A stretch of DNA of 64,000 nucleotides from Anthoceros angustus (lineage: Eukaryota; Plantae; Anthocerotophyta): positions 186,001 to 250,000 of the forward strand of contig MU008162.1 of the NCBI GenBank assembly GCA_010909165.1. Direction: 5' to 3'. This document shows, piece by piece, positions 13,390 to 51,155 of the stretch. The first letter of the stretch is position 1, and every line of letters begins with the position of its first letter. The position numbers were made by a program, and so were the translations under genes. The notes beneath the pieces were generated by a model. That model did not search any database and was not told the DNA's origin. It saw only the letters and a list, made by a program, of their open reading frames with translations.

Positions 13390-13910
13390 TCTATGAAGTT
13401 ACCTTCTTGGGGAAATTGTCCCCTGCCTGAGGTTGTTCGTATTTGCAAGCTTTGTTCCCTCGACACTAAATCTGAATTACACTTCTTCTTCTATTGCCCT
13501 ATCTATGCTTCTATTCGGGCTCTTTACACTTTTCTTTTTGAGTGTGTTAGTTTCTACTTGCACAATTTTTTCTCCTTTCATATACCTAAGCTCACAGGCC
13601 TATGTCTCTCTGAGCTTCTTGATTATCGGCAGACCCAGTTGAACTCTGTATAGATTTTTACCTCTTTTTTCATTCTCATAGTTTTCCCTCAATTTTTTCT
13701 CATCTCAGACAATCTGTGTCTACATAGTTCATATGTATGTAAGTGTACGCAGTGTTTCACCCCTTTTTTCATTGTACTATCTCTGTCCTCTGTGTCTACA
13801 TAGTTCATATGTATGTAAGTGTACGCAGTGTTTCACCCCTTTTTTCATTGTACTATCTCTGTCCCATGATGGTCCTTCCATCTTTAGTGCACGTAAATAA
13901 AGTTGTTGTT
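13390..13910 (+). mobile_element. LINE 3'-end fragment (RT C-terminal zinc finger, 3' UTR and simple-repeat tail)
   Basis: RICKLCSLDTKSELHFFFYCPIYASIR fits the CxxC..HxxxxC C-terminal motif of non-LTR ORF2; ends taaataaagttgttgttg; internal ~75-bp duplication at ~13715-13865. Confidence 0.7.
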
Positions 13911-13989
13911 GGTCTAAGGCGCCAGACTCAAGGTCTGGTCTTTGAAATGGGACATGGGTTCAACCCCCATATCTTATAAGAGTAGCAAT

Positions 13990-20751: not shown

Positions 20752-23454
20752 TCAACCCTTACAACTGCAACAACCAGCTGCGAATCGATGCACACGGTAG
20801 CCATCCCTTACAACAATGTCTCTCTGTTCAAGCCGTGACATAATCTCCGTGGAGCTGTGGCAGTCGCTGCACATGCGTAGATTCTTCGTTACCACCAGAG
20901 GTGTCCCACTAGGAGTGTTCAAGAGACCAAACGCCAGAGCTAGCTTCTCAGCATGCCCACAAAGCACATCTTCCTTTTCCTTCTCACACAGTGGCTTCAA
21001 CACCAACTTCGTGTGAGGTACGTGGCCTCCTTCCTGCTTCAGACGTACACTTGTACTCTCTACCTTAAGCGCAATATCCTCTCTGGCTTCCCCCACCAGA
21101 AATCTATGTACCTCCTTATTCACTTCAATGCTCGCCACTGCAGGTTTCTTGTTAGCTCCTGCTGCCCTTCTCTGTCTTTCAATCCTGTCTACATCGGTCC
21201 ACCTCCCTGCATCTGCGTAGGCATTGGCCATGAGCACATATGCGGCTGCCTCCTTGGGGTCTAGCTCAACAATGCTTTCAAAACACCACGTCGCTCTCTC
21301 TATATCCCCATGACTCTTGCAGGCATTCAGCAAAGACATCAAACCCACGACATCCCTTTTGCCCTCACATGACAACAGCATCTTCTGGGCCGCATCTAAG
21401 TGGCCCGCACGCCCAAGAAGATCAATCATGCAGGTGTAATGCTCAATAGTAGGTTTGATGCCATGCTGTTCAGTCATGGAATCAAAGAGTTTGCGACCCT
21501 CGTGAACCAGTCCCTGATGACTGCATGCAACTAGAAGGCAACTAAAAGTAGCACCATTAGGCTGAATACCGGCAACTAACATCTCCTCAAAACAGGCTAG
21601 TGCTCTGTGGCCGTCATCACAAATACCATACCCAGATATCAGTGCCGTCCATGTAACCACATCCTTTGTGGCCATGCCGTCAAACACCTGGCGTGCATTT
21701 CTCAGTTCACCACATTTTGCATACATGTCTACCAGGCAGCTGCCCAACACTACGTTATCCAACAATCCTCTTTCCACAATCTGTGAGTGCAGCTGCGTGC
21801 CCGTCTGTAAGGCACCAGTGCTTGAACAGGCCTTCAGAAGGCAAGCAAAAGTAACATGGTCAGCCAAAACAAGGCCCCCCTCCTCCATTTGTCTATACAG
21901 AAAAAGCGACTCATGTCCAAGCCCTTGCTCGGCGTACCCAGCAATCAGCACCGTCCATGTCACCACATCCCTCGTGGCCATGCTGTCAAAAACCTGGCGT
22001 GCATCTTTCAGTTCACCACACTTTGCATACATGTCCACCAGGCAGTTGCCCACCACTACGTCATCCAGCAGTCCCCTTTTCACAATCTGTGAGTGCAGCT
22101 GCCTGCCCTTCTGTAAGGCACCAGTGCTTGCACAGGCCTTCAGAAGGCAAGAAAAAGTAACATGATCACCCAAAATAAGGCCCGCCTTCTCCATTTTTCC
22201 ATACAGAAGAAGCGCCTCATGTCCAAGCCCGTGCTCAGCATACCCAGCTATCAGAGCATTCCATGTCACCACATTCTTAGTGTTCACGCTGTCAAAAACC
22301 TGGCGTGCATCATCCAGTTCACCAAATTTTGCATACCCAGCTATCAGGGCATTCCATGTCACCACATTCTTCGTGGCCATGCCATCAAAAACCTGGCGTG
22401 CAGCTTTCAGATCACCACACTTTGCATACATGTCCACCAGGCAGGTGCCAACAAACACGTTCAGGGGAATCCCACTGTGCAATACATCACAATGCACTTT
22501 CCTGCCAGATTCCAAGTCCGCCGCAAACGTACAAGCTTGGAGGGCAGCTACAAAGACGTGGGCATCCGCATTCACTCCTGACCTGCCCATCTTATGGTAC
22601 AGCTGTATGGCCTCCTTAGGTTTCCCATGCTTGGCATATGCAGAGATGATGGAAACCCACATGAAAGCATCTGGTTTGGCCACCCTGGTGAACACATCCA
22701 TGGCCTCCTGCAGCCTACCTCCGCTTGCATACATGCGCAAGATATGGTTCCCCAAGTAGGCATCCGACTCGTACCCGAGTTTGAAAGTGAGGTCATGAAC
22801 TCGCCGCCCCACAGCCAGATCCTTCTTAGCTGTACACAGTTTCAGCACGGTGTAAAACAGAGACTGAGAAATAGCAACAGCAGAGTCTGTCAGCGCCAAA
22901 GATTCCAGGGCTCCCACGGCCTCAGAAAGCTTCCCCTGCTGACATAACGTGCTCACGGTTACAGCCGTAACGACGCCCATATCCAATTCTGCACGCCTTC
23001 CAGGTTCAGGCTTATCCGGAAAGGGAGAGCTCCACTTGGAAGGAGAGGCACCATGACCCATCTGCATATCCAAGGAAACGAGCTGCTCATCAACCCAAGC
23101 TGGCTTAAACAAGTTGTCTAACCACAGCACCTCGCCGGACCCCTTACGCCGGAAATCAGGCGAACGGGAGCTCTTCTTGTCTGGTCTCCTGTCCCACCAC
23201 ATGGTAGGATCCAGAAACAATTGTTGCCACAAGTGCTCCTGCTCCTGGCGACGACCATCGATCCACAACCCGTCCCCAGCCACACATTTTCTCGGAAGCG
23301 GAAATGCTGGGCTCCTTACACTGCTACACATGGAGGCTTGGTTGGTTGCCGTGGATTGACTCCCTGAGGCTGCGATGGGCTTGGCAGGAGCTTCTCGTAG
23401 AATCCCAGCACACCCACCAATTTGTTGGGTCGACAATAGTCTCCCCCGACGCAT
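20752..23454 (-). CDS. PDF-motif + PLS-PPR + DYW:KP (GRP-like) RNA-editing factor, intronless
   Basis: WWDRRPDKKSSRSPDFRRKGSGEVLWL motif; PLS array; KKPAVASIEV box; HAEKLA, NLRMCSDCH; ends CSCKG* followed by a Pro codon. Confidence 0.93.
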   Translation of the reverse strand: MRRGRLLSTQQIGGCAGILREAPAKPIAASGSQSTATNQASMCSSVRSPAFPLPRKCVAGDGLWIDGRRQEQEHLWQQLFLDPTMWWDRRPDKKSSRSPDFRRKGSGEVLWLDNLFKPAWVDEQLVSLDMQMGHGASPSKWSSPFPDKPEPGRRAELDMGVVTAVTVSTLCQQGKLSEAVGALESLALTDSAVAISQSLFYTVLKLCTAKKDLAVGRRVHDLTFKLGYESDAYLGNHILRMYASGGRLQEAMDVFTRVAKPDAFMWVSIISAYAKHGKPKEAIQLYHKMGRSGVNADAHVFVAALQACTFAADLESGRKVHCDVLHSGIPLNVFVGTCLVDMYAKCGDLKAARQVFDGMATKNVVTWNALIAGYAKFGELDDARQVFDSVNTKNVVTWNALIAGYAEHGLGHEALLLYGKMEKAGLILGDHVTFSCLLKACASTGALQKGRQLHSQIVKRGLLDDVVVGNCLVDMYAKCGELKDARQVFDSMATRDVVTWTVLIAGYAEQGLGHESLFLYRQMEEGGLVLADHVTFACLLKACSSTGALQTGTQLHSQIVERGLLDNVVLGSCLVDMYAKCGELRNARQVFDGMATKDVVTWTALISGYGICDDGHRALACFEEMLVAGIQPNGATFSCLLVACSHQGLVHEGRKLFDSMTEQHGIKPTIEHYTCMIDLLGRAGHLDAAQKMLLSCEGKRDVVGLMSLLNACKSHGDIERATWCFESIVELDPKEAAAYVLMANAYADAGRWTDVDRIERQRRAAGANKKPAVASIEVNKEVHRFLVGEAREDIALKVESTSVRLKQEGGHVPHTKLVLKPLCEKEKEDVLCGHAEKLALAFGLLNTPSGTPLVVTKNLRMCSDCHSSTEIMSRLEQRDIVVRDGYRVHRFAAGCCSCKG

Positions 23455-24739
23455 CGCCTTGGCCTGGAGCCCACAACCAGGACGGTGGAAGGCAAGTGTA
23501 CATAGGGTGCCACCAAATTAGGTTTCCATGGTTTGGTGGAAAATCCAAACTCATCTACCTCTTCCACCTTTCCCATCGTCTGTCCAGTGCGAATTGTACT
23601 TCCGACCCATACACCCTCTCTTATGCTCCCACACAGTTTTGGGCTGCTCCTCTGTGCGTAGCGTGGGTGTGACACTGTGAATATACCCACACTACACACA
23701 GTGTCACCCAGTCCCAGTAGTGCACGTTCACAGTTGCTTAGTTTCAGTCGACTGTGGAAGCAAGGCAAGAGATGTGGCCGGAACTGGGACGATTGGGAGT
23801 TATGGCATATTCCACCGGTCCCAGTGCTCAGCAAGCAGCAGGCAGCACGTACATTCCAGCATCAGACCCAGCATCAAACCCGGCCCAGCATCAACATAAC
23901 ATTACTGTTGTACCCATCAGAGCCATCCCAATGCCTCAATTGGTCTCGTTAACGTCTTAACCTGTCCGCTGTGCCCACACTCATCCATGGATGCATACGC
24001 ACGATGGCAATGCATGCATCAGTACTAGTGTGCGTGAAAGCCGGCGACACATTCCATGCATGTCTAATGTCTCTTGGGCACGCCCTTCATCATTCACGCG
24101 CCCCTAAATCGCGAGGCGCCAGCCAGCTCCGGTACCAATCGGAATCGGCAGAGGCAGCAGCACCCATCAGAGCAATTTGCAAGCATGGGCTCCGGGGCAG
24201 TTTCCATGATGTGGATCTGTCTTGTGCTGCATGCTTGGGTCGATTCGGCCGAAGAAAAGATGCCGAGGAGCTGGCCCGATGAAAAGGCAGCTGACAGCTT
24301 TGTGGGCTCTACAGGGGAAGGAGGAGGTATAGCCCGAAGCGGAAACGACGAGGAGGGGACGGGACGGAACAGGGGAAGTAGGAGGTATAGCGGAGGGCGG
24401 ACGGAAGCCCTTGTCCAATCCCAGAAGCGGAACGGAAACGGAAACGGAAAGGGGATCCGGAACTGTTGGTACTACAGGGTGGGGAGACTCAGCCGCCCAG
24501 AATTCATCAATGCGGCGCGAGGAAGCTCGAGTCCACCGACGGGCTTCCGGTGCGTCTGTTACGGGAGATGGAGGAGGTATAGCAAAGGGCGGACGGAAGC
24601 TCTTGGGGGGAACGGAAACGGGACCTGGTGGTACACACCACACTAGGAGCTGTTGGAGGCCTAGGGAACAGGAACGGGAACGGGCCAAGGACAAGGTGCC
24701 AAGCTCCACGCCATAACAAAATTAAAAAAAAGGTAGAAT

Positions 24740-25030
24740 ACCATCTTGACTACCTAGGCTAGAGATAGAATACATCTTGACTACCTAGGCTAGAGGTCGA
24801 TGTGGTCGTTCCTCGAGCCTTCTGGTTTGGAAAGGATCCTATTAGGGAGTGCATATTGATTATGATTTTTCACTCTATAGATGATCACCTCCAGGTTATG
24901 TTTCACTCTATAGATGATCACCTCCAGGTTATGAAGGCTAGATCTATGTTACAGACAACTCAGTTATATATCAATGAGGATCTTACATCATTGCAACTCA
25001 GTTATATATCAATGAGGATCTTACACCATT
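24740..25030. repeat. Cluster of short tandem duplications (~31, 30 and 38 bp)
   Basis: catcttgactacctaggctagag x2; tttcactctatagatgatcacctccaggttatg x2; caactcagttatatatcaatgaggatcttac x2. Confidence 0.8.
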
Positions 25031-26840
25031 GCAATGGAAGACTAAGAAGGAGAAGTTACCCACTTTCAGAGCAGCTCGTGCTGTAGGTCAAGTGGCTTTC
25101 TTTCGTGGGGATGAATTGGTGGTGTTTGGCCCTTGTTCACGCAATTTCATTGACAATGTTGATTGATTGAAGATTATTTATCTTATTTAATTTTTACCTT
25201 TACATTAGTCCAGATTATTTTACCACAATCTATGTAGTTATCATATTTCAATCCCATGACGGAAATCCGTCCTTAATAGACTTAAATAAAATTCTTCTTC
25301 TTCTTCTACCTACCTATTAGTCCAGTGTCCTATTTAGGCTGCACTCCAACACTTCAGTGGGCTTTGGATTTGCTGAAGGTGTTGTACTAATACCTATTAG
25401 GTTGTATTATTATATATAAAAATATAAAAATATTTTGTAAATATTATTAATAATTTTATAAATTACAATTGCTAATTGATCTTGTTGGTTATGCAGGCCT
25501 AGTAGATGAGGTACAAAAGTTACTACCATCATGTTGAAGCCAAATTAATGTCATGGGGTTGATGTGTTGCTGAACACCTAAAAAAAAAGATGGGACATAG
25601 AGAACTGGTGCTCACCTTTGAGCCTACAAATATAATGGGGATTTAGAGAACTTGTGCTCATGCCTAAGAGCCAATGGATTGAAAGCATTCGAGACCTTTC
25701 AACACTAGGCTAGCACAACTTCAGATGTACTAGAAACAGAATGAAAGATTGGTGACTTCATTCAACTGATGATATTCAACTGATTTTATTCATTCTAATG
25801 ATATATTTAGTTTAAAGTAAAAATAATTATGTTTTAACATAAAATAGATGATGATTTTGTATAAATAAAAAACTTCTGAGTTTTGAGAACCGTGCGCTTC
25901 TCAAACCCCCCTAGGCAGCGCATGGAGACATAAGGGCTCATGGGATGGAGCTGCCCGACGAGGCTGCGGCGCTGCCCAGTTTGGGGCCATTGCGTTTTTG
26001 GACACATTCCTTGCATCGCTTCGGGTGTGCATTTCAACGTTTCACCGGTTCCCGAGAAATACTTTCTATCGTCCGACAGCCACTTGTCCGTGTGACCTGG
26101 GACAGGAGTCGCAAAATGTGCATGGATGCCCGCCCGTTTCGCGCTTCGAGCCATGGACACCATGGCATGCCTCTAGGTTCTATGCCTCATTCTCTATCCA
26201 ACCTCTTCTATTATCCTACCTGCCTTCCCATCCGTCGTCTCAACCATGGGCGACGCCTGGAGATCCATTCAGCGGCCGTCATGCGCGTAATCGCCTCCCT
26301 AGCCCTCGGTAATGCCATACCCGATGTTACCATGCCCCCGCCGCCAGTGGTGAAGACGATATAGACTTATGGAGGCTATAGCCAAGTGACCACCCCAGTG
26401 TTGAGCATGCGCTACTCCCAACAACATCAAAGCCATGGCATAGAGTTCGGACTTTCGAGAAAGTTCATTATGGTGGGATCCCATGACATGAAAGGCAACC
26501 GCAACCCCGAGCCCGGAGGATATGGGAAAGTACCCTGTTCGCCGTCCCAGGAACTAAACTGTTCTAGATGTGGAGCCACTTGTGGATCATAGATACCTCC
26601 CTCTCTTGTCTACGGGAGAGCGTGCTTGCCAAGATTCTATCCTCTTTCCTGCACCAACATATAGATGAGAGATTTTTATGGCTGTACATGTGCACCATTC
26701 TAAAGACCTGGGATTGCTGAACTGTGCCCACGAGAGTGGCAGAGATCTAGAAGAGAAGCACAGCAGCTGCCTAGCTAGAGCTTGTGTGCAAGCTTATAAT
26801 TACGACGAGTGTTGCTGGCATATTTAATCTTGGGCACAAT

Positions 26841-28121
26841 ATGGATCTGTGCAGGTTCACTGCGAGTCTGAGGTGTGCCCGTTCTGGTAGTAGCGACTGC
26901 AGATCTAGAGCAGAGGCTGTCCTACAACAAGGCCCTGCTAATTCTTCTTTTTTCTTGACACTTCCAGTTTCTTCTACCTTGAGGCACAAGACTCTTTCTG
27001 TGTCTGTCAGATGCGAGGCCGAGGTGGATGCTCGCACAACGCCTAGGCATGTTCCCGTTGGCAGGCCCAAGCCGGTGATGGGCGATGATGGTGGCCTTGG
27101 CCATGGCGCTGGCATGAACACCAGCGTGCTGACGTCTGTATACATGGATTTCCTGCACAACATGTCCTTCAACAATTCCCGGGAAACCTGCTACCCTGAC
27201 CGGCTGGACACCATGATCGCACGGGTGAGAGAAAACGGCGGATCCTTCATGCCGGATCGGTACATCAACATGGGAGCTGCGTTCGGGAATTTGGTATTCA
27301 GCCTCCACCCCGAGGACGTGCAAGCCAAGATCGGACATTTCACCGCTCTGTTCCTGCTGGTGGACGATCTGGCAGGGAAGCTGACGGGGGCGGCGCGAGA
27401 GAGGTACCTGGAGGACATCCGCTTGTTCCAGATGAAGTTCGCGGACCCAGAAGGGTACGCGAGGCGGTACCCCGGCCGGGGCGACCTGCACGAGGCGCTG
27501 GAGAAATTCATCGTCTATCTCAAGACGGAGCAGAACCCCTTCCTCCCCACGGAGCTCCGGCTGCACAGCATGATGATCAAGTCCGTGCTGGACTTCATGG
27601 AGGCCAACCTGCAGGAGCAGCACTACGAGCACGATCCGATCGAGTACACTGCTGACATGGCCCAGCTGCCCAGGTTCCTCCGGAACAAGTCCGGCATAGC
27701 TGAGCTCTACGCGTACTTCCTCATCATGCCGACGTCGTCCTCGGGCTCTGCCTCGGAAGATGAGCACTTCTTCTACAACAACCTGTATCCCATGGTCCCA
27801 GAGCTTGTCGACGTGATTAACTTCGGCAACGATGTCATGTCGTTCTACAAGGAGGTGCAGGCAGGAGAGGATTCCATCGACATTGTGAACTACTCCAAGA
27901 TTCACAACCTGCCGCTTCTTCAGTCTCTTCGGGACAGCATGGAGACTGTGATCCTTTCCAGGACGAGACTGATGACCTTGGTCGACAGGACTGGTTCTAA
28001 GGAGACCAAGGACAAGCTTGTGAGATTCTTGCAGGGATATCTGAGTTGGCATCTTGGGGTCAGACGGTATAGGTTGGGTGAAGTTTTGTGTGGGTGGTAC
28101 AACGGCGGCTACTGGGCATAG
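26841..28121 (+). CDS. Microbial terpene synthase-like protein (MTPSL), trichodiene synthase/Tri5-type, intronless, putative plastid transit peptide
   Basis: Class I terpene synthase motifs LVDDLA, FLRNKSG (pyrophosphate-sensor Arg), NDVMSFYKE (NSE/DTE), WH..VRRYRL (RY pair); no seed-plant-type N-terminal domain; Ser/Arg-rich leader ending SVRCEA. First ATG is 26841 (the ORF-track start is GTG). Confidence 0.88.
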   Translation: MDLCRFTASLRCARSGSSDCRSRAEAVLQQGPANSSFFLTLPVSSTLRHKTLSVSVRCEAEVDARTTPRHVPVGRPKPVMGDDGGLGHGAGMNTSVLTSVYMDFLHNMSFNNSRETCYPDRLDTMIARVRENGGSFMPDRYINMGAAFGNLVFSLHPEDVQAKIGHFTALFLLVDDLAGKLTGAARERYLEDIRLFQMKFADPEGYARRYPGRGDLHEALEKFIVYLKTEQNPFLPTELRLHSMMIKSVLDFMEANLQEQHYEHDPIEYTADMAQLPRFLRNKSGIAELYAYFLIMPTSSSGSASEDEHFFYNNLYPMVPELVDVINFGNDVMSFYKEVQAGEDSIDIVNYSKIHNLPLLQSLRDSMETVILSRTRLMTLVDRTGSKETKDKLVRFLQGYLSWHLGVRRYRLGEVLCGWYNGGYWA

Positions 28122-29001
28122 CCTTTCAACACGTGCTTGCAAGATAATCAGAAAATCCTTGCAAATGTGCTCACTGCAGCTGCATTCGTAGACTAGATTA
28201 GATTGATAGATAGATATATCGATTTCTTTAAGAAGAAGAAGATGTGATTGAAGCTTGTCCACAAAGGATGTTATATGGTGTATTGTGGGGTACTATAAAA
28301 TCTCGATTCTCGAAAACGGGTTACTCACACGCAACCCAAATGACAATGATGTCTCCTAGCTTGTGAGACAGAGGGGTAAGCTTAGATCTTAACCAAGCAC
28401 ATTATTTGAATGAATAATCAGATCAGCCTATCCAGCTGTTGTGTGTGTTTGCCTAAACGCACCAGCAGCACCCGTAAAGCCACTCTTCGCTTTCCCACGA
28501 GATGCCCGTAGTAAGCTCACATCTTTCCGTTTGGGATGGAAGTTTTTCCTCTAGGGAGGGAGAGGAACAGGAATGCTTCGTTGCTCAAGGCTTGCATCAA
28601 CGGAACCATGCCAGCACTTCCTCTCCCAGATGCCAACACTAGGGCCGAGGGTTGACGGCCTTGAAGGTGTACGAGGACGTGGCCACTCAAGGCATCAAGG
28701 CATCCATAGGGCTGCAGAATTACAAGTCCCCGGGCGGCGGGCGGCCTTGTCTATAATGTATGCAAATTCAAGTCCCCGGGTGGCCCTGTCTAATGGCTGC
28801 AAATTCGCTTTACTTTTCGTGAATCCAAATGAAATTTCCAATGATCAATATCCCAATGATTCAGAGCAACTTCGTTTCTGAACCAACTTGGTTGAGTCCA
28901 AATGCAGTCCAAGGGCACTCAACTGCCATGCGTAAGGCAAGTCCCCATACCAGCCTGCAACTGAGCGTTCAGACTCTCTTAATTGTTTGGCACTGGGCAG
29001 A

Positions 29002-31257
29002 CTAGAAGTGGTGAGTAGCCTGGATCCTGATTGGGACACCGTTGTTGGGGCATGGCAGACCCGACAAGTCTCGGCCACTGTCTGGCTTTTCTACTGTCCA
29101 CCTGTTAATTCAATACCAGTTGAGATCGGTCAGATCAGATAATAGTCCAATGGACAATTTTGCTATATATAGGGGAACATCATTAATGGGGTCGCACCTG
29201 AACTTGAACATCAGATGATGCAACATCACTTTCATCTCCATTAGTGCCAGATCCTTCCCAAGGCACAACCTCTGTCCACCTCCAAATGCCAGCAGGGTGA
29301 AAGGCTTCGGTGGCACCTGTAAATTCATAGCCACCAAACGCAGTGTCTCAATCTTGATTGCTCCCAAGATGTCTAAATGATTCGGAGATAGTCGACTGTA
29401 CATAATGATTCCTAATATATGTTGAATTCAAGCATCAGGGTAGGCTGCTTACATCGAAGCGAGAGGGATCGAACGCGTCCGGGTCTTGGAAGATTTCTGG
29501 ACTATGGTGCAAGTTGTGAGTGTCTAGCATAAGGTTCCAGCCTTTAGGGATGTGGTACCCTGCAGTGGCACATGTATGTGTGTCAGACGCACATTGCTTG
29601 GAGCAATGCTAGGTGCAGCATACATACCGTTGAATACGAAGTCCTCCTTGACCCGTCGATGCCACCAGAAAACGACAGAAGACACTCGGAGTGCCTCGTT
29701 GATCACCTGCATGTATACATAGGACAAGTCAGATATCGATCGTCTACTCTTAGGACGCCAGCTTTGAGTGAGCGGTAGGGCGGAGAATATCAACATTTGT
29801 TGAGGAGGGATCCGAGACTCACTTTCAGGGTGTAGCTCATTGGTTGTCCGAGATCCGCCCATGTCAGTGGCTCACCAGCTTGTTTGTTACTTCTCACTGC
29901 CAAATGCTCAGCCTACAGTTCAATGTACAGACAGAAAACTTGAAGGTAGAGCTCGCCTGGACAGCCAAGATATTCTGGACACCTGAAATTGTTTTCATAT
30001 GGACAAGCTCACCAGCAGCTTCTCCTTGACGCTGGGATTCTCATGAAGCAGCTTGACAAGCCAGGTGAGTGTGGTGCTCGCGGTCTCAAAGCCAGCAATG
30101 ATGATGCTGAAAAGATTGTCCCTCAGCTGCTCGTCGCTCAGGGCAGGCTTGTCGCTGGAAGATTCGGGGTCGACTGCGTTCATCATGTCGTTCAGCAAGT
30201 CGCTGCGGACAATTTTCCCGCTCCTTCTCAACGCGAATTCGGTGTCGAACATTCTGAGCAGCTCCCTTCTTGCCTGCACGCCCCATTGCAACCTTGGAGA
30301 AATGGACACTCTGCTCCAATTTAAATTTGGATTCGGCCAGGGCTTGAATTCGCACCTTCATGGCCTTGTGAAAGGCGAATCCAGGAAGATCGATGGGCGC
30401 CTGGAGCAAATTGTTACTCACTGTTTCGGTGAGCTCCAAGCTCCTCTCACGCTCTGGACCAGGGCCCCAGCTCAGCGCCACTCGCGCGATCACGTGATAA
30501 GTGAACTGTGCACCGTCAGCAGCAGCTACCAGTTAGAAAGACTCACTGTCAGCCGATGCTTTGGTGTGGTGGTCGGGCACACAGCACAGTTCAAAACGAC
30601 CCGGGCTCGAATCTTCTTCCCTTGAAGAATCACAATCAGCTGGTACCAGCGCTCACGCATTGCAATTTGCAGGCAAACGAGCAGGGTTGGGACTAGCCGA
30701 CTAGCCTTGATGGCCTCGTGTTTTATGACGCGGACGTCGCCCAGTCTCCAGGAACTGAGCGTCTCCACAGCCGTTTGCTCCACCAGCGGCAGATACTTCC
30801 TGATGCTCTCGGCCAGGAAGGTTTCGTTCAACAACTTGCGATACAGCTTGTGCCTGGGGCCGTGCACATTGAGCATCGATTCCTGGCCCAGAATCTTGTT
30901 CACGGGAGGGAACTGGTGCGCCTGCACCAGCTTCTCCTCGCTGGTGACCAGCAGCTTGGCCGCCTCGGCGCCCCTGAAAAACACATACGGACTCCCGAAC
31001 ATGTGCGACTTGAACACATTGCCATACTTGCCAAAGCGCTTCATCCTGAACGCCTCCGGATCCCCGGCCTTGAAGCAGCCCAGCAGCTCCATCGTCTCTC
31101 CCAGCAGCGGGAGGCCCATGCCCCCCGGCAGCTGCTTCGATCCCTCGGGCGCCCATGCCCCCCTCCGCTCCCAGTACCTCCACGCTGGCCACGCCACAGC
31201 CACCACCGCAACTACTGCAACCGCCACCAGAATCTCCACACCCACCGTCACCTCCAT
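29002..31257 (-). CDS. Cytochrome P450, CYP85-clan-like, 8 exons, apparently intact
   Basis: TM anchor then LPGGMGLPLLGET; I-helix AGFETAS; K-helix EALR; FDPSRF; heme motif FGGGQRLCLG; last exon WTVEKPDSGRDLSGLPCPNNGVPIRIQATHHF* with TAG at 29002. Intron 1 appears to use a GC donor. Confidence 0.9.
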
Positions 31258-31512
31258 GGCTGCCGTGCGATGTGGGTACTTTCCATAACGCAATGCCGTG
31301 CTATGTACTGGTGCTAGTCTGTAGACTTCGAAAACAACGCCTAAATGCGAGTTCATCTATTGCCCAAAGAGAGCTAAGGATCCATACTTGTCCACTATTC
31401 TATGGACTAGTGCTGCCTAGGAAAACCTGCCTAAAAAGGGGAGTCGATCCATGTAAAAAGGGGGAGTTGATCGATATCCAAAAGACAGTGCTAAAGGATC
31501 CATACAGTCCAC

Positions 31513-31862
31513 TAGTCTATGAACTAGTGCTCCTAGCTAGAGCTTATGGACTAGTGCTCCTAGCTAGAGAGCTTATGGACTAGTGCTCCCTAGCTGAGAG
31601 CTTATGGACTGGTGCTCCTAGCTAGAGAGCTTATGGAGTAGTGCTTTCTAGCTAGAGAGCTTATGGACTAGTGCTCCCTAGCTAGAGAGCTTATGGAGTA
31701 GTGCTTTCTAGCTAGAGAGCTTATGGACTAGTGCTTTCTAGCTAGAGAGCTTATGGACTAGTGCTCCCTAGCTAGAGAGCTTATGGACTAGTGCTCCCTA
31801 GCTAGAGGTCTTATGGGCTAGTGCTCCCTAGCTAGAGGGCTTATGGACTAGTGCTCCCTAGT
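31513..31862. repeat. Minisatellite of ~30-bp units (ctagtgctccctagctagagagcttatgga), about 11 copies
   Basis: Direct head-to-tail repetition with point variants and no unique spacers. Confidence 0.93.
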
Positions 31863-32039
31863 GATATCTTTGTTAGTTTCCATATTCATCACAACCATCT
31901 GTTCTCAACTCTTGGGATGCTCCTTTATTGTTGCCATCCCGGTCTCCATGTGCTGAAGTTATTGTAATGAGGTCTATTTATGGTAGAAAATACGATTTTC
32001 GTCTTATCTATCCACATCTTTATGCCCATTGCCTTGAAT

Positions 32040-32985
32040 AACGCTCTTGCTTGCTCATGCGAATAACGCTCTTGCTTGCTCATGCTTCTTCGCAATACGA
32101 AAAACTTGGAAAAACTTGGAAAAACTTGGAAAAACTTGGAAAAACTTGCTCCAACATAGGAGGCAGGACCTACTCACCCTACTCTAAACCGGATAGGAAC
32201 AGGTAAATGAAGAAAGAAAAAAATCACTTTTTTACTCATTAAGGTAAAATTTCATATACATTGGATAAATATAATAGGTGAAAACCAAAACTGATGGATA
32301 GAACTCAAAACTAGAAGCTAGAAAACAGAACTCGAGGATAAAAATTGGAACTAATGGGTAGAACTAGTGGGTATAAAACATTCACCAAATGGCTGTGACT
32401 GCTGCTGTTCACAACTTGCCTTGCATGATTGTGACTGCTGCTCCCCTCAACCTGCCTTGCATGCTTATGACTGCTACTACCCACAACCTACCTTGCATAG
32501 GCTGTGGGGTGCTGGTCTTGCTGCTACTTGGCTGTTATGTTGTGCCCGTGAGGTTAACCTGTAAGCGGCGCAAGTGTCTGCAGTACGTGTATTATTGTTG
32601 CATGTGTCTGCAGGACCTATTACTGCTTTTTTACCAAACCCCCAGCTTTGTGCGCTTCGTGGGGATCTGCTTTTTGTTTTTGTAGCTCTTGTAGTTGATT
32701 TGTTTCTATAGCTGATTATTTCTGTAACTGATTTGTTTCTGTAGTTGATTTGTTTCTATAGCTGATTGTTTCTGTAACTGATTTGTTTCTGTAGTTGATT
32801 TGTTTCTATAGCTGATTGTTTCTGTAGCTAATTTTTTCTGTAGCTGATTTTTTCTGTAGCTGATTTTTTCTGTAGCTGATTTTTTCTGTAGTTGATTTGT
32901 TTATGTAGCTGATTTGTTTATGTAGCTGATTTATTTTTGTAGCTAATTGTTTGTATAGCTGATTTGTTTCTGTAGCTGATTTATT
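32040..32985. repeat. Short tandem arrays: aaaacttgga x~5 (32100-32148), ~33-36-bp unit x3 (~32395-32500), tagctgatttgtttctg-type array (32690-32985)
   Basis: Directly visible periodicity. Confidence 0.85.
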
Positions 32986-34300: not shown

Positions 34301-37300
34301 ATTATATTTACTCATTTTTTATTTACCTTATTGCACGCAATCGATAACGAGCATTTTGGGATTAGTTCCACGCTTCTTGAAAATTCTGTAGTGGAAGGAT
34401 AAAACTTGGACCTAAAAACTAATATTTACGATAGAGATCTAGTGCAGCCTTGACATGTTTTGGAGCAACCTTTGTCTATACAAGGCTCATACGTCGCCAC
34501 GATCGAGAAAGGAGCGGGTCTCACCTCCTATCACGGCAGTGCATTTTACGCCATGGAACTGGTGTTGGTCGGGGCGCCTGGCTTATACATGCCTCGGCCT
34601 AATGGACTCAGCATGTCCGCATTGGGACGTCCCTCCCGACGCCAGTAATAGGTATAACCTTTCTCCGTAATAGGAAAAACTTCCTCCAACGTATAACGCT
34701 TCTCCACAATAGGAAAAACTTGCTCCAACGTATAAGTTTTACCATATACTGTTGTTAGTTCTTAAAAATCATCATCCCTTATGTCTTCATCCAGGTTTGA
34801 AATATACTTGAAGCACACCTTGATTTCATTGTGCATTCCCGTATCCATCACAAGTTGGCTAGTTCAATAGTAGAGCATCAACCTAGTCTTGTCAAGCTTC
34901 CTCTTCCAGTTGGCCAACTCTTCTATTTTCATTAGGTTGATTGATGGAAATCTAAGTTCTAACATGTGGAGAAAAAAATTTGACAAGCTCCGAGTTCTTA
35001 CTATTAACAATGAACTCCATGAAAATTTTCAAATAAAACTTGTATGCATCATTGAAGCAAAGAAAATTCTTACTTAGGCTCTAAGTTTACCTCTTCCCCT
35101 CCATTCTCTTGTAATTTTAGTAGAACATGCACATTAATTGGTTGATAGATACTGATGACTTTGGGTGCTCTGAATACTTCTCACCTTTTGCTGGTAATAG
35201 AATTCCCCCTCTAGTCTTCTTCTCCACTACAAGGGTTTTGTCTATGGAGGAGCCTAATATTTGCTCTGCACTGTTGCCTACCAGTTTTAGTCCTCTACTC
35301 TCACATACTTGTTTTACTTGTTCATTAGATAGCTCACAAGTTTTGTCATTCCCATCTTCCATTAGCTCTCTCTCTTTTAGTTCAAATCCTCTCTCTTCAG
35401 GCATAACTATCTCAACTCTTCATTAGTCAGGCATGTTGTTCTATTCTCCTCATCCACTGCTATTTGCCTCTCCTGTCCACTCCTCTAATTCATGTTAGAG
35501 TTCCTATATTCATACATCTGCCTAACTTCCTCATGTGTCAAGTTTGAAACTTCAGGCGCTTCTAGTCCTTCTCACTTTCATTAGGACATCACTCTCTTCG
35601 CCCTCACCACTCCCCCAACTATTACAGATACCATTATTTTTAAGAAGCTCCTTGCACCCAAGTTTAAGTTCTGGAGGTCTACCTCTCCCTCTGCAAATAG
35701 GTGTTTCACTGGGTAGCTCACAAATTTCTACCATGTTGATTGTTGTACTTGGCTCTCCTTTCTAATTAGATTCCTTTACAGAGGCCCTAGTCACTTTGAT
35801 ACTTTTAGTTGTAGGTCTTCTCATTTCAAAAAGTTTATTTGATGGCTATGAGTATGTGTGGGATGACTTTTGCTAGTAGGGCTAGCAAGGTGTACACTTA
35901 TAACTTAATGTCGATGTAGTACTAGGGTCGTTCCACAGCTTATTGTACCTAAGCTCCACAACTTATTGGCTAAACGGGCTCCATCAGGTTGGGTCCGGTG
36001 GAAACTGCGGAGTCTAGGCATGTGCTACATAGCAACTCAACAGACCATGCACGCGACACACTGGACCTTCGTACAAGGCTCTTCTCAGGGTGTCTCAAAA
36101 ATTTGAGGTCCAACGGACTGGAACAGATTTAGCGACATGTTTCCCCATCAGACACCGTACCCTAGCACCTCTGCGCACATACCTCCTTAGCTCCACATCT
36201 TCCAACTCACAACTCTCGACTCCGCTTAACAACAACTCTAATACAATGCACAAGCCACATCGTCTTCCTTCCTTCTCCCTTTCTCACACACAGCTACTAC
36301 TAGAAACACCAACTCCCCGACGTATTCACACATGATTGCCTTTGCTCCTCCAGACTGCTTCACTTGCGATGAGGTAGTGGCTTCTCAGCTTGCAACCCCA
36401 TGGCCTCCTCCCCAGCAGCCACCAAGGATGGCTCCGTGCCACAGGTCACCCCCACAGTGCTACCTGAGCTTAGGACTAATCCTATTCTGCACCCATCAAA
36501 TGTGTTAGCGCAGCTCGTCATCAGAGCTCTCGACGCATTCCCCTACCACCAATCAATCTTGCGTGGTTATGTAGGAACACACTCAACTCCTCGAGCGCAT
36601 GACAGCATGAGCACACAGAGCGCAAAATTGGCACAAGGAATATATTATCTATTGGTCATGGGCACCAAGGCCTCCTTCTATAGCCTCCCTAAGGTTTACA
36701 TCTCGATAGCAACCCCCAACCCTAGACGCTACATATCGATAGCAAAATTAGCTGGGCCTGCCTGCTCACCCTAACCTAACCAGCCCATATACGTGCGAGC
36801 CAGATCGCAGAATCTCCATCGTATGCCACCATTTATGATGGCACCTGACTCATTGCCGCTGACCCCAAGCCCTAGGACGACGCAACCGCCAGGCCGTAAC
36901 TCATCTTGCCAAGCCGGCCTTCTTCCACCGGCCCTGCACACCCGCCAAGCGGCGAATCCGTTACCGGACTACGCTGTCATGGCTGGACCATCCCGCCAAG
37001 CCACTCCCTCCCACACTGAACCAGCTCATCTCAACGAACCAGTCCAGCAGTCGCCGGTCCACCTTGGTCTCCAACAAACCGAGGTCTAGGATTGCACTTT
37101 AAGTGCAAGTTAGCTAAAAATGGCCTTATTGGCTATTAAACTCCGCCCTATCCCTAATAAAAAACAACAGCTCAAAAAGAAACAAAATTAAACAAGCCGC
37201 CGAGGTTATGAACGTCGGATTTGGCACTCTACAGTATGAACTCGCTAAACTTTTGCTATACCCTCTAGATCAAACTAGTTTGTATTTGAACCATCAAGAA

Positions 37301-38662: not shown

Positions 38663-39035
38663 AGGCGTGCATTACCAAGGTCCCGCGTGCTTCCCGCCGT
38701 GCACGGCTCCCGGGTGGAAGCCGTGCTCCGATAGCCCAATGGCCGCCCGCAGCCCCGCGCCTCCCGCTCCCACAACCACCGCATCGTATGTGTGGTCAAT
38801 GACCGAGTAGGACGCTCTCTCCCCGCCCTCCTTTTCCGCAGGCGCTTCTCGGCCCAGGATCCGAGACCCTCCCCGCGCGGCGTTGCCATGCATGGCTCGC
38901 CTAGCCCCAGCGATGATCGTCGGCCTCACCACCTTCTTCCGCCTGCTAGGGCCTTCAACATCCTCCTCTTCTTTTCTTTCTAGTGAAAGCTCCTCCTCTT
39001 TTTGTTTGAAGGGGGCGTGCACTAATTTTTGTGTT
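38663..39035 (-). pseudogene. SDH1: Rearranged 5' fragment copy of the SDH1 locus
   Basis: Matches 50996-51420, including upstream acaaaaa.tagtgcac.gccccc.tcaaacaaaaa, the ATG region and [27 protein letters not shown]; the last 19 bp (ggcgtgcattaccaaggtc) is inverted. Confidence 0.88.
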
Positions 39036-39435
39036 TTCATATAGCCACGTTAGGCATCACTTTGTATAAGCGTTTATACTAGCGTTTGTATTCTAATTGG
39101 TAGTGTATAATAAAGGTAAGGGCTGGAGCCTTGGAAGCCCTCGAGTCCGTTTTTTGCCCATGCAATTTGTGGAGGCCCACGACTTCGTGTTTTGCCCATG
39201 CCATTGGTGGAAGCCCTCAAGTTCGTCTTTTGCCCATTCATGGGTGACTGTGTGTTGGGAGTAGGGAGATGAACAGGGAATCCCCAATTCCTAATTTCCT
39301 ATGGAAAGCTTTGTGTGCTTGTTTGGGTTACCCACTCGTTAATCGTCGTCTCAAGTCTGAGACAATCTCTACAAAAGAGTTTCCTACAAGATGGGCATCA
39401 CCTTGGTGCTGCGTGCGTGTGGGTTGTGTGTTGAA

Positions 39436-42375
39436 TCAATGCCGGTCTCCGCATGAGCATGAGCCATCCAGGAAGCGGTGGACACGATGGACATCCCTCA
39501 CGATGATCTCTCGCTTCTCCAGGCGGGACATGATCTTGGTGCTGCTGTGGCAGTCACCGCACATGCGGAGGTTCTTGGTCACCATGAGGCTGGTGCCAGA
39601 TGGGGTGTTTAGGAGGCCGTATGCCAGGGCCAGTTTCTCAGCATGCCCGCATAGGGAGTCCTCCTTCTCCTGCTCGGACATGGGCTTGAGGACCAGGTCT
39701 GTTTGTGGGACATGACCTCCCTCTTCCTTCACCCGGGTGATCATGGTCTTGAGCTTGGAGGAGATTTCGCGCCGGTCTTCTCCTACTGTGAATTCGTGGA
39801 CCTTGTGCTGTACTTCGATGCAGGCTTTGGCGGCCTTTTTCTTGGCTCCTGCTGATTTTCGTAGGCTTTCTAGCCTGTGGACGTCGTCCCACCTGGCTGC
39901 GTTGGCGTAAATGGTGCCCAGGAGGACGTAGGAGCTGGCGTCGTCGGCTTCTGATGATGATGTGAGATGGTTGAAGCATCGGATTCCGCGCTCGATGTCG
40001 TGGTGGGTTTTGCATGCGGATAGCAGAGCTGTCCAGCCCACCACGGTGTTTGCAAGTGACACGGTTTGGAGAAGATGCTCGGCTTCGTCCAGGCGGCCTG
40101 ACCGGCCCAAGAGATCAACCATGCAGTTGTAGTGGTAGTCGCTTGGGACTATGTTATGCTCGTCCACCATCTGCTTGAATATCCGTTGCCCTTCCTGTAC
40201 CAGGCCTGCGTGACTGCATGCCACCAGAAGGCAGACAAAGGTTCTTTCGTTGGGACGGATGCCTTGTTCAAGCATGTTGTGGAAACACCGCATTGCCAGT
40301 TCGCAGTTGCTGTGTTCTGCGTACCCATTGAGCATGGCATTCCATGTGACCACATCCCTGCTGGGCAGTCTGTCGAAGACGTTGCAAGCGTCTTCCAGGC
40401 TCCCAAACTTTGAATACATGTCCACCAGGCAGTTTCCGATGCGGATATCCAGTTCCAGACCCAGTTCCCGGATCTGGGAGTGGAGCTGCTTGCCCTGCTG
40501 CACTGCTCCTACACTGGCACATGCTTGAACAAGGCACACAAATGCCACATGATCGTCTGGAGTGATGCCCTCGTGCTGCATACTTGCATACAGAGCCAGG
40601 GCTTCTCTTCCCAACCCCTGTTGGGTGTAGCCTCCGATCATGGCTGTCCATGTCACCACATCTTTCCAGGGCAAATTGTCAAACACTTCTCGAGCGTCTT
40701 GCACACTCCCGCATTTAGCATACATATTCACCAGGCAGCTACCGATGAATGCATCAACTTCCAAGCCTCGCTCACGAATCTGTAAGTGGAGCTGCTTCCC
40801 CTGATGCAGAGCTCCCACACGGACACATGCCTGCAGCAGGCATGCAAATGTGACATGACTGGCAGGAGTGATACCCTCCCTCTGCATACCAGAATACAGA
40901 GCCAGGGCATCTTCACCCAGCCCCTGCTGCATATAGCCTGTGATCATGGCATTCCATGACACCACATCTCTCGTGCGCAAACTGTTGAAGATTCTGCGAG
41001 CAGCTCTCAAGCTCCCACATTTTGCATACATGTCCACCAGGCAGTTACCGATCCGCACGTCGCCCTCAAGTCCTCGTTCCCGAATCTGTGAGTGCAGCTG
41101 CTTGCCTTCCTGCAGGGCTCCCACACTGGCACAGGCTGAAAGAAGGCACACGAAGGTGACATGGTCCGCAGGAGTGATGCCCTCACGTTCCATAGAGGCA
41201 TAGAGAGCCAGGGCTTCTCTCCCACGCCCCTGCTGAGTATATCCTGCAATCATAGTATTCCATGTCACCACACATCTTCTGGGTAAACTGTCAAACACCT
41301 TGCGAGCATTGTCCACACTCCCACACTTGGCATACATATTCACCAGGCTGTTCCCCACAAACAGATCGGCCTTCACAGCACTGGCCTGAATATCAGCATG
41401 CACCTCCTTCCCAGAAACCAGGTCCTGTGCTGAGGCACACGCCTTGAGGACTGCCACAAAGATATGGTTATCAGGCTTCACACTGGCTTCCCGCATCTGT
41501 CGATACAGGTTGATGGCCTGAGAGGGTTGTCCATGTCTTGCATGTGCCAAAATAATGGAAGACCACATGTAGACATCAGGGACAGCCACCTTTCTAAACA
41601 CCTGCACTACATCCTCCAATCTGCCATGAGAAGCATACATACCGATCATGTGGTTAGCCAAGAATGCGTTTGACTCGTGCCCACATCGGACAGCCAGATC
41701 GTGAACCCGCCTAGCCAACACCAAGTCCCTCCTGGCCTTGCACTTCTTGAGCACAAGATACAAAACGGAATCAGTGACTTGACGTCCACGATCCACAAGG
41801 AGCTCCAACCCTTCCACAACCTCGCCCAACTCAACGGCCTCAGAAAGCTTCCCCTGCTGACATAACGAGTTCACGATTCCAGCCGTAACGACGCCCATTT
41901 CCGATCCTGCGGGCCCGCCAGGTTCAGACCTATCCCCAGACCTGGACTCGGAAGGAAAGGCACCATGACCCATCTGCATATCCAAGGAAACGAGCTGCTC
42001 ATCAACCCAAGCTGGCTTAAAGATGCTGTTTAACCACAGCACCTCCCCGGACCCCTTCCGGCGGAAGTCAGGCGAACGGGAGCTCTTCTTATCACGTCTC
42101 TTGTCCCACCACATGGTAGGCTCCAGAAACAAACTTTGCCACAAATGCTCCTGCTCCTGCTCCTGGCAACGACCATCACTGGCAAACCTGTCCGCACCCA
42201 CACATGTTCTCGGAATTGGAAGCGCTGGGCTCCTTCCACTGCTGCACCTAGAGGCTTTGTTTGCCAGGGGTTCAATCCGTAAAGTGAGGTGAATGGGAGC
42301 TCCAGGGAGAATCCCTATACACACACCAATTTGTTGGGTCCGCGACAGGTCCGGTTGCCATACTGCGGCCATCAT
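39436..42375 (-). CDS. PDF-motif + PLS-PPR + DYW:KP (DRH-type) RNA-editing factor, intronless
   Basis: WWDKRRDKKSSRSPDFRRKGSGEVLWL; long PLS array; KKKAAKACIEV box; HAEKLA, NLRMCGDCH; ends CSCGDRH*. Confidence 0.95.
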   Translation of the reverse strand: MMAAVWQPDLSRTQQIGVCIGILPGAPIHLTLRIEPLANKASRCSSGRSPALPIPRTCVGADRFASDGRCQEQEQEHLWQSLFLEPTMWWDKRRDKKSSRSPDFRRKGSGEVLWLNSIFKPAWVDEQLVSLDMQMGHGAFPSESRSGDRSEPGGPAGSEMGVVTAGIVNSLCQQGKLSEAVELGEVVEGLELLVDRGRQVTDSVLYLVLKKCKARRDLVLARRVHDLAVRCGHESNAFLANHMIGMYASHGRLEDVVQVFRKVAVPDVYMWSSIILAHARHGQPSQAINLYRQMREASVKPDNHIFVAVLKACASAQDLVSGKEVHADIQASAVKADLFVGNSLVNMYAKCGSVDNARKVFDSLPRRCVVTWNTMIAGYTQQGRGREALALYASMEREGITPADHVTFVCLLSACASVGALQEGKQLHSQIRERGLEGDVRIGNCLVDMYAKCGSLRAARRIFNSLRTRDVVSWNAMITGYMQQGLGEDALALYSGMQREGITPASHVTFACLLQACVRVGALHQGKQLHLQIRERGLEVDAFIGSCLVNMYAKCGSVQDAREVFDNLPWKDVVTWTAMIGGYTQQGLGREALALYASMQHEGITPDDHVAFVCLVQACASVGAVQQGKQLHSQIRELGLELDIRIGNCLVDMYSKFGSLEDACNVFDRLPSRDVVTWNAMLNGYAEHSNCELAMRCFHNMLEQGIRPNERTFVCLLVACSHAGLVQEGQRIFKQMVDEHNIVPSDYHYNCMVDLLGRSGRLDEAEHLLQTVSLANTVVGWTALLSACKTHHDIERGIRCFNHLTSSSEADDASSYVLLGTIYANAARWDDVHRLESLRKSAGAKKKAAKACIEVQHKVHEFTVGEDRREISSKLKTMITRVKEEGGHVPQTDLVLKPMSEQEKEDSLCGHAEKLALAYGLLNTPSGTSLMVTKNLRMCGDCHSSTKIMSRLEKREIIVRDVHRVHRFLDGSCSCGDRH

Positions 42376-50770: not shown

Positions 50771-51155
50771 ACTACAAAGCATAGATTTGCGTCACCAACG
50801 GAAACGGATCCATGTCCACCTTGCTCAAGCAAAACAATGATCCAGCTTAAGGCTCACGAGTTAGTGGAAGACACCCTGCATCGCGCGCTACATAATATGA
50901 TATCAAGTGACAGGGTAAACGTTACGTGTTCCTCTCGCTTGGACACACGACACACTGTACCGATTTCTTTTACAAAGTCCAGGATTTCTCTAAAAAACAA
51001 AAAGTAGTGCACAGCCCCCCTCAAACAAAAATATGTCAGTGGTTAGGTTTGGAGGAGCGCAAAAGTGAGGTTCTAGAAGAGAAGCTGGAGGTGGAAGAAG
51101 GAGGAGGAGGAGAGTGAGGGGAGGAGAAGCTGGAGGTGGAAGAAGGAGGGGGAGG

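Follow-up and report, generated by a model that had tools for sequence, protein, structure and literature searches.

A fungal-type terpene synthase gene and a CYP7005-like P450 gene lie tail to tail in hornwort nuclear DNA: possibly independent neighbours or a candidate terpenoid gene pair

A 64-kb stretch of hornwort nuclear DNA (the window, to which all coordinates refer) carries two intact genes of specialised metabolism in tail-to-tail orientation, a TRI5-family terpene synthase gene of the microbial terpene synthase-like (MTPSL) type and a cytochrome P450 (P450) gene of the CYP85 clan. Their stop codons are 880 bp apart, which agrees with the spacing of about 880 bp given in a first-pass annotation of the window. 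The seed-free plant host that it had supposed proved to be a hornwort, to whose nucleus the neighbouring genes are suited, among them three pentatricopeptide repeat (PPR) genes, two of which encode a DYW deaminase domain. The same annotation proposed that synthase and P450 form a pathway. We consider the chances to be evenly balanced that the two are independent neighbours, each acting as its family does, and we regard the gene pair as a sound candidate, not a demonstrated pathway. The coordinates of both genes and of the features discussed below are collected in Table 1.

The synthase open reading frame (ORF) is uninterrupted from its first ATG to its stop codon and encodes 426 amino acids (aa). 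The protein matches the Pfam family TRI5 with 55.6 bits (cut-off 25.2; E 5.5e-15), and its best matches in the PDB are all fungal, namely SydA (2e-14), the trichodiene synthase of Fusarium (7e-10) and longiborneol synthase, the alignment with the fungal PDB and Pfam entries beginning only after about residue 240. A word search returned four proteins only, all of them cDNA-derived Anthoceros MTPSLs: A. agrestis MTPSL7 (427 aa) is the top match with 83–84% identity at 100% coverage, followed by MTPSL6, MTPSL2 and MTPSL5 with 60–66%. A word search with the C-terminal half, aimed at short contig fragments, gave nothing beyond known cDNA proteins, and a metagenome scan using the MTPSL alignment found zero relatives. 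The protein is predicted to be an intact MTPSL7-type enzyme, either a close paralogue or the orthologue from a hornwort species distinct from A. agrestis. Hence, the first-pass description of an intronless, fungal-type (Tri5-like) MTPSL gene ending at 28121 and carrying DD, RxxSG, NDxxSFYKE and RY motifs was accurate, coordinates included.

The first metal-binding motif, VDDLAGKL, is missing its third acidic residue, and the same reduced DD recurs without variation across the five aligned Anthoceros MTPSLs, several of which are active enzymes (PMC13364417). The second motif, NDVMSFYKE, aligns to the equivalent motif of SydA. As an MTPSL7-type class I enzyme that would derive from an old fungal transfer, the synthase would hold Mg2+ by means of DD and NDxxSxxxE, ionise a prenyl diphosphate and cyclise the resulting cation. 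The recombinant hornwort MTPSLs that showed activity all produced sesquiterpenes in vitro (PMC13364417), and cloning and assays of hornwort MTPSLs, MTPSL7 among them, have already been reported (Xiong et al. 2018, Phytochemistry 149:116, as cited in PMC13364417). Synthase and A. agrestis MTPSL7 share the start MDLCRF, and the N-terminal extension of about 95 aa, including its ...SVRC end, is kept in all five aligned proteins. The extension, in which S, T and R residues are abundant, has no confident structure, with predicted local distance difference test (pLDDT) scores of 25–30 in an AlphaFold model built from five sequences (mean pLDDT 42). MTPSL7 reportedly also accepted geranyl diphosphate (GPP). 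We infer that the extension is probably an organelle targeting sequence that directs the protein to plastids; MpMTPSL2 of Marchantia is plastid-localised (bioRxiv 10.64898/2026.07.16.738752). The GC content at third codon positions (GC3) of the synthase gene is 0.73 and equals that of the P450 gene, so its codon usage is fully host-adapted, in agreement with the old fungus-to-bryophyte transfer proposed for MTPSLs in the literature (PMC7027989, PMC12890914). Antisense ORFs, including one of 446 aa opposite the synthase, have no Pfam match and were set aside as shadows of the GC3-rich coding sequence.

The P450 gene lies on the minus strand and is likewise intact, its eight exons (1,458 nt) encoding 485 aa from the ATG at 31257 to the TAG at 29002 with no internal stop. 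Pfam p450 matches fall on three of the exons and the P450 signatures are complete (AGFETAS, EALR, FDPSRF and FGGGQRLCLG). The region 25900–31500 (5,601 letters) was compared with the contigs of four sequencing runs, X1 to X4. The DNA run X1 matches the window near-exactly, if piecewise, and therefore comes from the same organism, whereas X2, from the same sample, is recognisable as RNA by its spliced contigs. On the P450 gene, X2 provides a fully spliced paralogue contig of 1,609 nt (about 87% identity, depth 85), whose joints agree with the modelled exon borders and thus confirm them. Intron 1 is of the GC-AG type (AAG/GCTAGT) and the remaining introns are GT-AG; GC-AG introns work in plants. 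Across the exon 1/2 junction the protein aligns colinearly with every homologue, and the paralogue mRNA is joined exactly at ...CAAG/TTCACT. A GT-AG alternative for this intron, with the donor 4 nt downstream and the acceptor 20 nt upstream, adds eight residues found in no homologue nor in the paralogue mRNA and was rejected. The same fate befell a nine-exon model with a 21-nt 'intron' at 30401–30421, which is too short, in frame and stop-free and is read through in the paralogue mRNA. The intact eight-exon gene ending at 29002 that had been annotated at first pass is thereby upheld, the paralogue transcript crossing the supposed ninth-exon break.

Table 1. Features of the synthase–P450 locus, in order of position in the window.
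Feature	Position	Strand	Basis or remarks
TRI5-family terpene synthase coding sequence, MTPSL7-like	26841..28121	+	intronless ORF, 426 aa; Pfam TRI5; MTPSL7 alignment
N-terminal extension, ~95 aa	26841..27125	+	five-MTPSL alignment; not in fungal enzymes
First metal-binding motif reduced to DD (VDDLAGKL)	27363..27368	+	D175, D176 invariant in alignment
RNKSG (RxxSG) motif, residues 281–285	27681..27695	+	R281, K283, S284, G285 invariant
NSE/DTE-type second metal-binding motif NDVMSFYKE, residues 330–338	27828..27854	+	N330, D331, S334, E338 invariant
C-terminal RY pair	28065..28070	+	R409, Y410 invariant
Intergenic stretch, 880 bp, both 3' ends	28122..29001		GC 0.47; single-copy by DNA-run depth
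P450 exon 8; TAG stop 29004–29002	29002..29101	-	stop codon
P450 exon 7; haem-binding FGGGQRLCLG 29286–29257	29198..29316	-	motif, Pfam
P450 exon 6; FDPSRF 29473–29456	29453..29559	-	paralogue transcript joints
P450 exon 5; ExxR (EALR) 29697–29686	29628..29706	-	paralogue transcript joints
P450 exon 4, 30 aa	29823..29912	-	joint 29911>30012, CT..AC ends, in paralogue transcript
P450 exon 3, 87 aa; I-helix AGFETAS 30096–30076	30013..30273	-	motif, Pfam
P450 exon 2, 50 aa, holds APIDLPGFAFHKAMK	30356..30505	-	paralogue transcript unbroken over 30355–30507
P450 exon 1, 184 aa; membrane anchor 31239–31180, hinge LPGGMGLPLLGET 31131–31093	30706..31257	-	GC donor AAG/GCTAGT
Minisatellite block upstream of P450	31518..32982		30-bp unit x11.7; 25-, 10-, 36-bp units; 17-bp unit x17.7

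The closest solved relatives of P450 exons 1 and 2 in the PDB are CYP120A1, CYP90B1 and CYP725A4 (taxadiene 5-alpha-hydroxylase). A word search with exon 1, run with a length ceiling of 483 aa against the 485 of the P450, was blank in a collection from which hornwort proteomes are apparently absent, and the top representative in an exhaustive representative search was just 45% identical. When the full length of the spliced model was compared with the search hits by BLASTP, identity was 40.9% to P0006, an unnamed Logan transcript, 40.1% to Ginkgo CYP7005C3 (38.6% on global alignment) and 47% to P0005, a fragment of 313 aa, with the CYP707-type abscisic acid (ABA) 8'-hydroxylases at 31–36% and CYP90A, CYP88 and CYP716 at 28–30%. 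The closest relatives found for exon 1 lie on the Logan SRR33208241 contigs L001 (972–2750) and L004 (787–3080), which encode P0005 (47%) and P0013; contigs L001–L004 are short, have no synthase and have an exon structure unlike that of the P450 gene, with the first 300 or so residues in one exon. Nested among CYP707, CYP7005, CYP88, CYP90 and CYP716 representatives, the P450 groups with P0006 and GbCYP7005C1–3 in both a quick tree (99 SH-aLRT) and a careful tree (100/99); in the latter, which does not include the named fern CYP7005A, it is the earliest branch of the CYP7005 clade. The next group is the angiosperm CYP707A clade, the joint set having a support of 95/84. By the nomenclature rule, a P450 belongs to a family if it shares 40% identity or more with one of the named members and is monophyletic with them. 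Judged by its sequence, the P450 is assigned to the CYP85 clan, in keeping with the first-pass annotation and with the trees against the families of that clan, and to a CYP7005-like lineage whose identity values straddle the 40% limit for a family, not to CYP707A. CYP7005 has been described as confined to ferns and Ginkgo (PMC9436924; bioRxiv 10.1101/2021.03.23.436569), with which the hornwort lineage of this P450 would group. The enzyme is predicted to be a monooxygenase anchored in the endoplasmic reticulum (ER) that uses O2 and NADPH via P450 reductase and probably oxidises a terpenoid or similar lipophilic scaffold.

The two genes differ in copy number. In the X1 overlay up to 12 different contigs lie on single P450 positions versus about two on synthase positions, and the intergenic stretch and the outer flanks remain at single-contig depth. 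Hence, the P450 family has expanded without the synthase, and since the intergenic DNA is single-copy the gene pair has not been duplicated as a block at 80% likeness or above. The run contigs contain many P450 paralogues of 80–99% likeness. The overlay of up to 12 contigs points to a CYP7005-like family that has expanded in this lineage to about a dozen close paralogues. Contigs in an RNA run show presence, not absence: X2 contains an exact contig of 293 nt (27946–28238, depth 5) that takes in the 3' end of the synthase gene and extends 117 nt beyond its stop codon, and in this single run no contig of at least 95% identity lies on the P450 gene. In a related organism (X3, X4), pieces that are about 90–95% alike cover the synthase gene and the flanks on either side of it and also span the last P450 exon and about 190 nt past its stop codon. 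None of the contigs of X3 and X4 bridges synthase and P450, and the P450-side contig of this relative has about 780 nt left of 28810 without a match to the window.

Several observations are consistent with two independent neighbours. The genes are convergent, which rules out a shared promoter, and they have not been duplicated together; in the single RNA run, the 3' end of the synthase is represented and the P450 is seen only as its paralogue. Among the ORFs surveyed, of at least 130 aa throughout the window and at least 70 aa in the flanks of the gene pair, no other biosynthetic enzyme (synthase, oxidase, transferase or prenyltransferase) is encoded. The locus physically links two non-homologous enzyme genes, whereas a plant biosynthetic gene cluster is expected to have at least three from the same pathway. 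In A. agrestis, 144 of 24,700 genes are CYPs (PMC9937507), from which it follows that about 1.2% of genes directly adjoin a P450; genomes have 6–7 MTPSLs each (PMC12890914) and ordinary terpene synthase genes besides, and one synthase–P450 pair per genome by chance is not improbable.

Other points weigh against independence and favour a different explanation, which we put forward tentatively as the less likely one: a two-gene terpenoid module in which the synthase, probably located in plastids, would make the scaffold of a mono- or sesquiterpene and the ER-bound CYP7005-like P450 would hydroxylate it or carry its oxidation further. Linkage would then hold alleles together, and co-regulation, if any, would be achieved via a shared chromatin domain, not via a promoter. 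Pairs of terpene synthase and CYP genes are non-random in angiosperm genomes (PMC6048515), and here two intact non-homologous enzyme genes of equal GC3 are separated by a mere 880 bp. The closest characterised relatives, GbCYP7005C1 and C3, belong to the well-supported clade that includes the window P450, sit in the GbLPS cluster and oxidise levopimaradiene, the direct product of that synthase (PMC9436924). A mini-cluster based on an MTPSL has been proven in Marchantia (bioRxiv 10.64898/2026.07.16.738752), oxidised sesquiterpenoids have been reported from Anthoceros (PMC13364417), and the relative keeps alignable proximal 3' flanks of both genes. However, the window copy of the P450 is unseen in the RNA run despite the presence of the synthase 3' end, there are only two enzyme genes, with no joint duplication, the Ginkgo enzymes, at about 40% identity, are too remote for a substrate to be transferred from them, and in the relative no contig bridges the two genes and the sequence on the P450 side departs from that of the window. 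The pathway of the first-pass annotation is backed just by the closeness of the genes and by the CYP7005 precedent of Ginkgo, with no third enzyme in the window, shared promoter, joint duplication or joint expression in the single RNA run to accompany them.

It is unlikely that the P450 gene is a silent or decaying recent duplicate whose reading frame is open by chance, with the synthase alone being functional at the locus. The non-canonical GC donor of intron 1 and the many close paralogues would fit such a duplicate, as would the RNA run, in which no contig reaches 95% identity whereas the paralogue is strongly represented. However, all 485 codons are open, the other introns are canonical, every P450 signature is intact and the GC-AG junction yields a protein colinear with all homologues; moreover, the RNA-run contigs prove presence only. 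Very unlikely is a hornwort counterpart of CYP707A, that is, a hormone-catabolic ABA 8'-hydroxylase unrelated to the synthase, since CYP707A, although of the same clan, the next closest clade and in possession of a FHKAMKAR-like motif in common with the P450, excludes it in the trees in favour of CYP7005, and about a dozen close paralogues would be unusual for a hormone catabolic gene. The brassinosteroid- or ABA-catabolic P450 that had been named at first pass as a case against the pathway is accordingly improbable, the enzyme lying outside CYP707A, CYP90, CYP88 and CYP716 and belonging to a many-copy family.

Comparison with known systems places the two genes as follows. The MTPSL7 of A. agrestis and A. 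punctatus (UniProt A0A2P1ED64) is intronless as well and shares the start, the N-terminal extension and the motifs with the window synthase, from which it differs in 16–17% of residues. The fungal TRI5 synthases (trichodiene synthase 1JFA, SydA 8YZX and longiborneol synthase CLM1) are alike in the C-terminal half, in NDxxSxxxE and in RY; the window synthase aligns to them only over residues ~240–420 and differs in its reduced DD, its added plant-type N-terminal extension and its GC3. In the GbLPS-CYP7005C cluster of Ginkgo biloba, the same P450 lineage adjoins a terpene synthase gene (PMC9436924). However, a plant-type diterpene synthase and five P450s make up that cluster, for which co-expression and activity have been demonstrated (PMC9436924), whereas the window has one P450 and a microbial-type synthase as a candidate pair. 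In Marchantia polymorpha, MpMTPSL2 and MpCPT5 provide a bryophyte example of physical linkage between an MTPSL gene and another gene from its pathway (bioRxiv 10.64898/2026.07.16.738752). There the partner is a cis-prenyltransferase gene, arranged head to head with a bidirectional promoter, and the link is knockout-proven (bioRxiv 10.64898/2026.07.16.738752), in contrast to the tail-to-tail candidate pairing with a P450 described here.

Hornwort MTPSLs and their fungal origin are already known, so that the system called undescribed in the first-pass annotation is new only in part: MTPSL7 itself has been described, and our literature search found neither a synthase–P450 pair or terpenoid gene cluster described in hornworts nor a CYP7005-like P450 placed in bryophytes. 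Very little is known of how bryophytes decorate the products of horizontally acquired synthases, and terpene synthase–P450 pairs seed many metabolic clusters of seed plants. It is possible, if rather doubtful, that hornworts have come to couple a synthase, which an early bryophyte acquired from fungi, with a native CYP7005-lineage P450. If so, the pair would be the first hornwort synthase–P450 metabolic gene pair and the first microbial-type synthase joined to a plant P450. It would also represent a second, independent synthase–CYP7005 linkage, more than 400 million years apart from that of Ginkgo, where the lineage initiates ginkgolide biosynthesis. The CYP7005-like lineage would then be older than a restriction to ferns and Ginkgo implies, and it has expanded to about a dozen copies in this hornwort genome. 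If functional, the pair would offer a directly testable two-gene entry to hornwort terpenoid chemistry and an example of a foreign enzyme connected with a native oxidase.

The surroundings of the gene pair had been annotated as repeat-rich on both sides, which holds mainly for the P450 side. There, minisatellites occupy 31518–31861, 32036–32148, 32394–32498, 32690–32982 and 34652–34735, whereas the synthase side has merely three two-copy tandem duplications (24734–25034). The repeats at 31518–31861 (30-bp unit x11.7, 91% match) and 32690–32982 (17-bp unit x17.7) are both well preserved, within an 8-kb interval, poor in genes and richer in AT, that separates the P450 gene from the next PPR gene. 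Besides PPR genes, the window contains genes for a GNAT acetyltransferase, a DEAD-box helicase, the succinate dehydrogenase flavoprotein (SDHA), a PPDK regulatory protein and a Rubisco LSMT-like protein. The two long PPR-DYW genes (20752–23454 and 39436–42375, both minus strand) and the PPR-E gene (69–1652, plus strand) are typical of hornwort genomes. An Rfam scan of the window gave no match; a tRNA-Leu(CAA) gene is located at 13897–13978 (plus strand). The SDHA gene (51114–53456) is contained in two plus-strand ORFs, 51114–52058 and 52116–53456, whose FAD_binding_2 matches (profile positions 1–259 and 160–414) overlap, which could reflect alignment slack or a partial internal duplication. 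At 38672–39040 on the minus strand, a 122-aa ORF ends in a match to positions 1–23 of the FAD_binding_2 profile (E 2e-4) and might, as a first exon or a fragment, be related to the SDHA gene.

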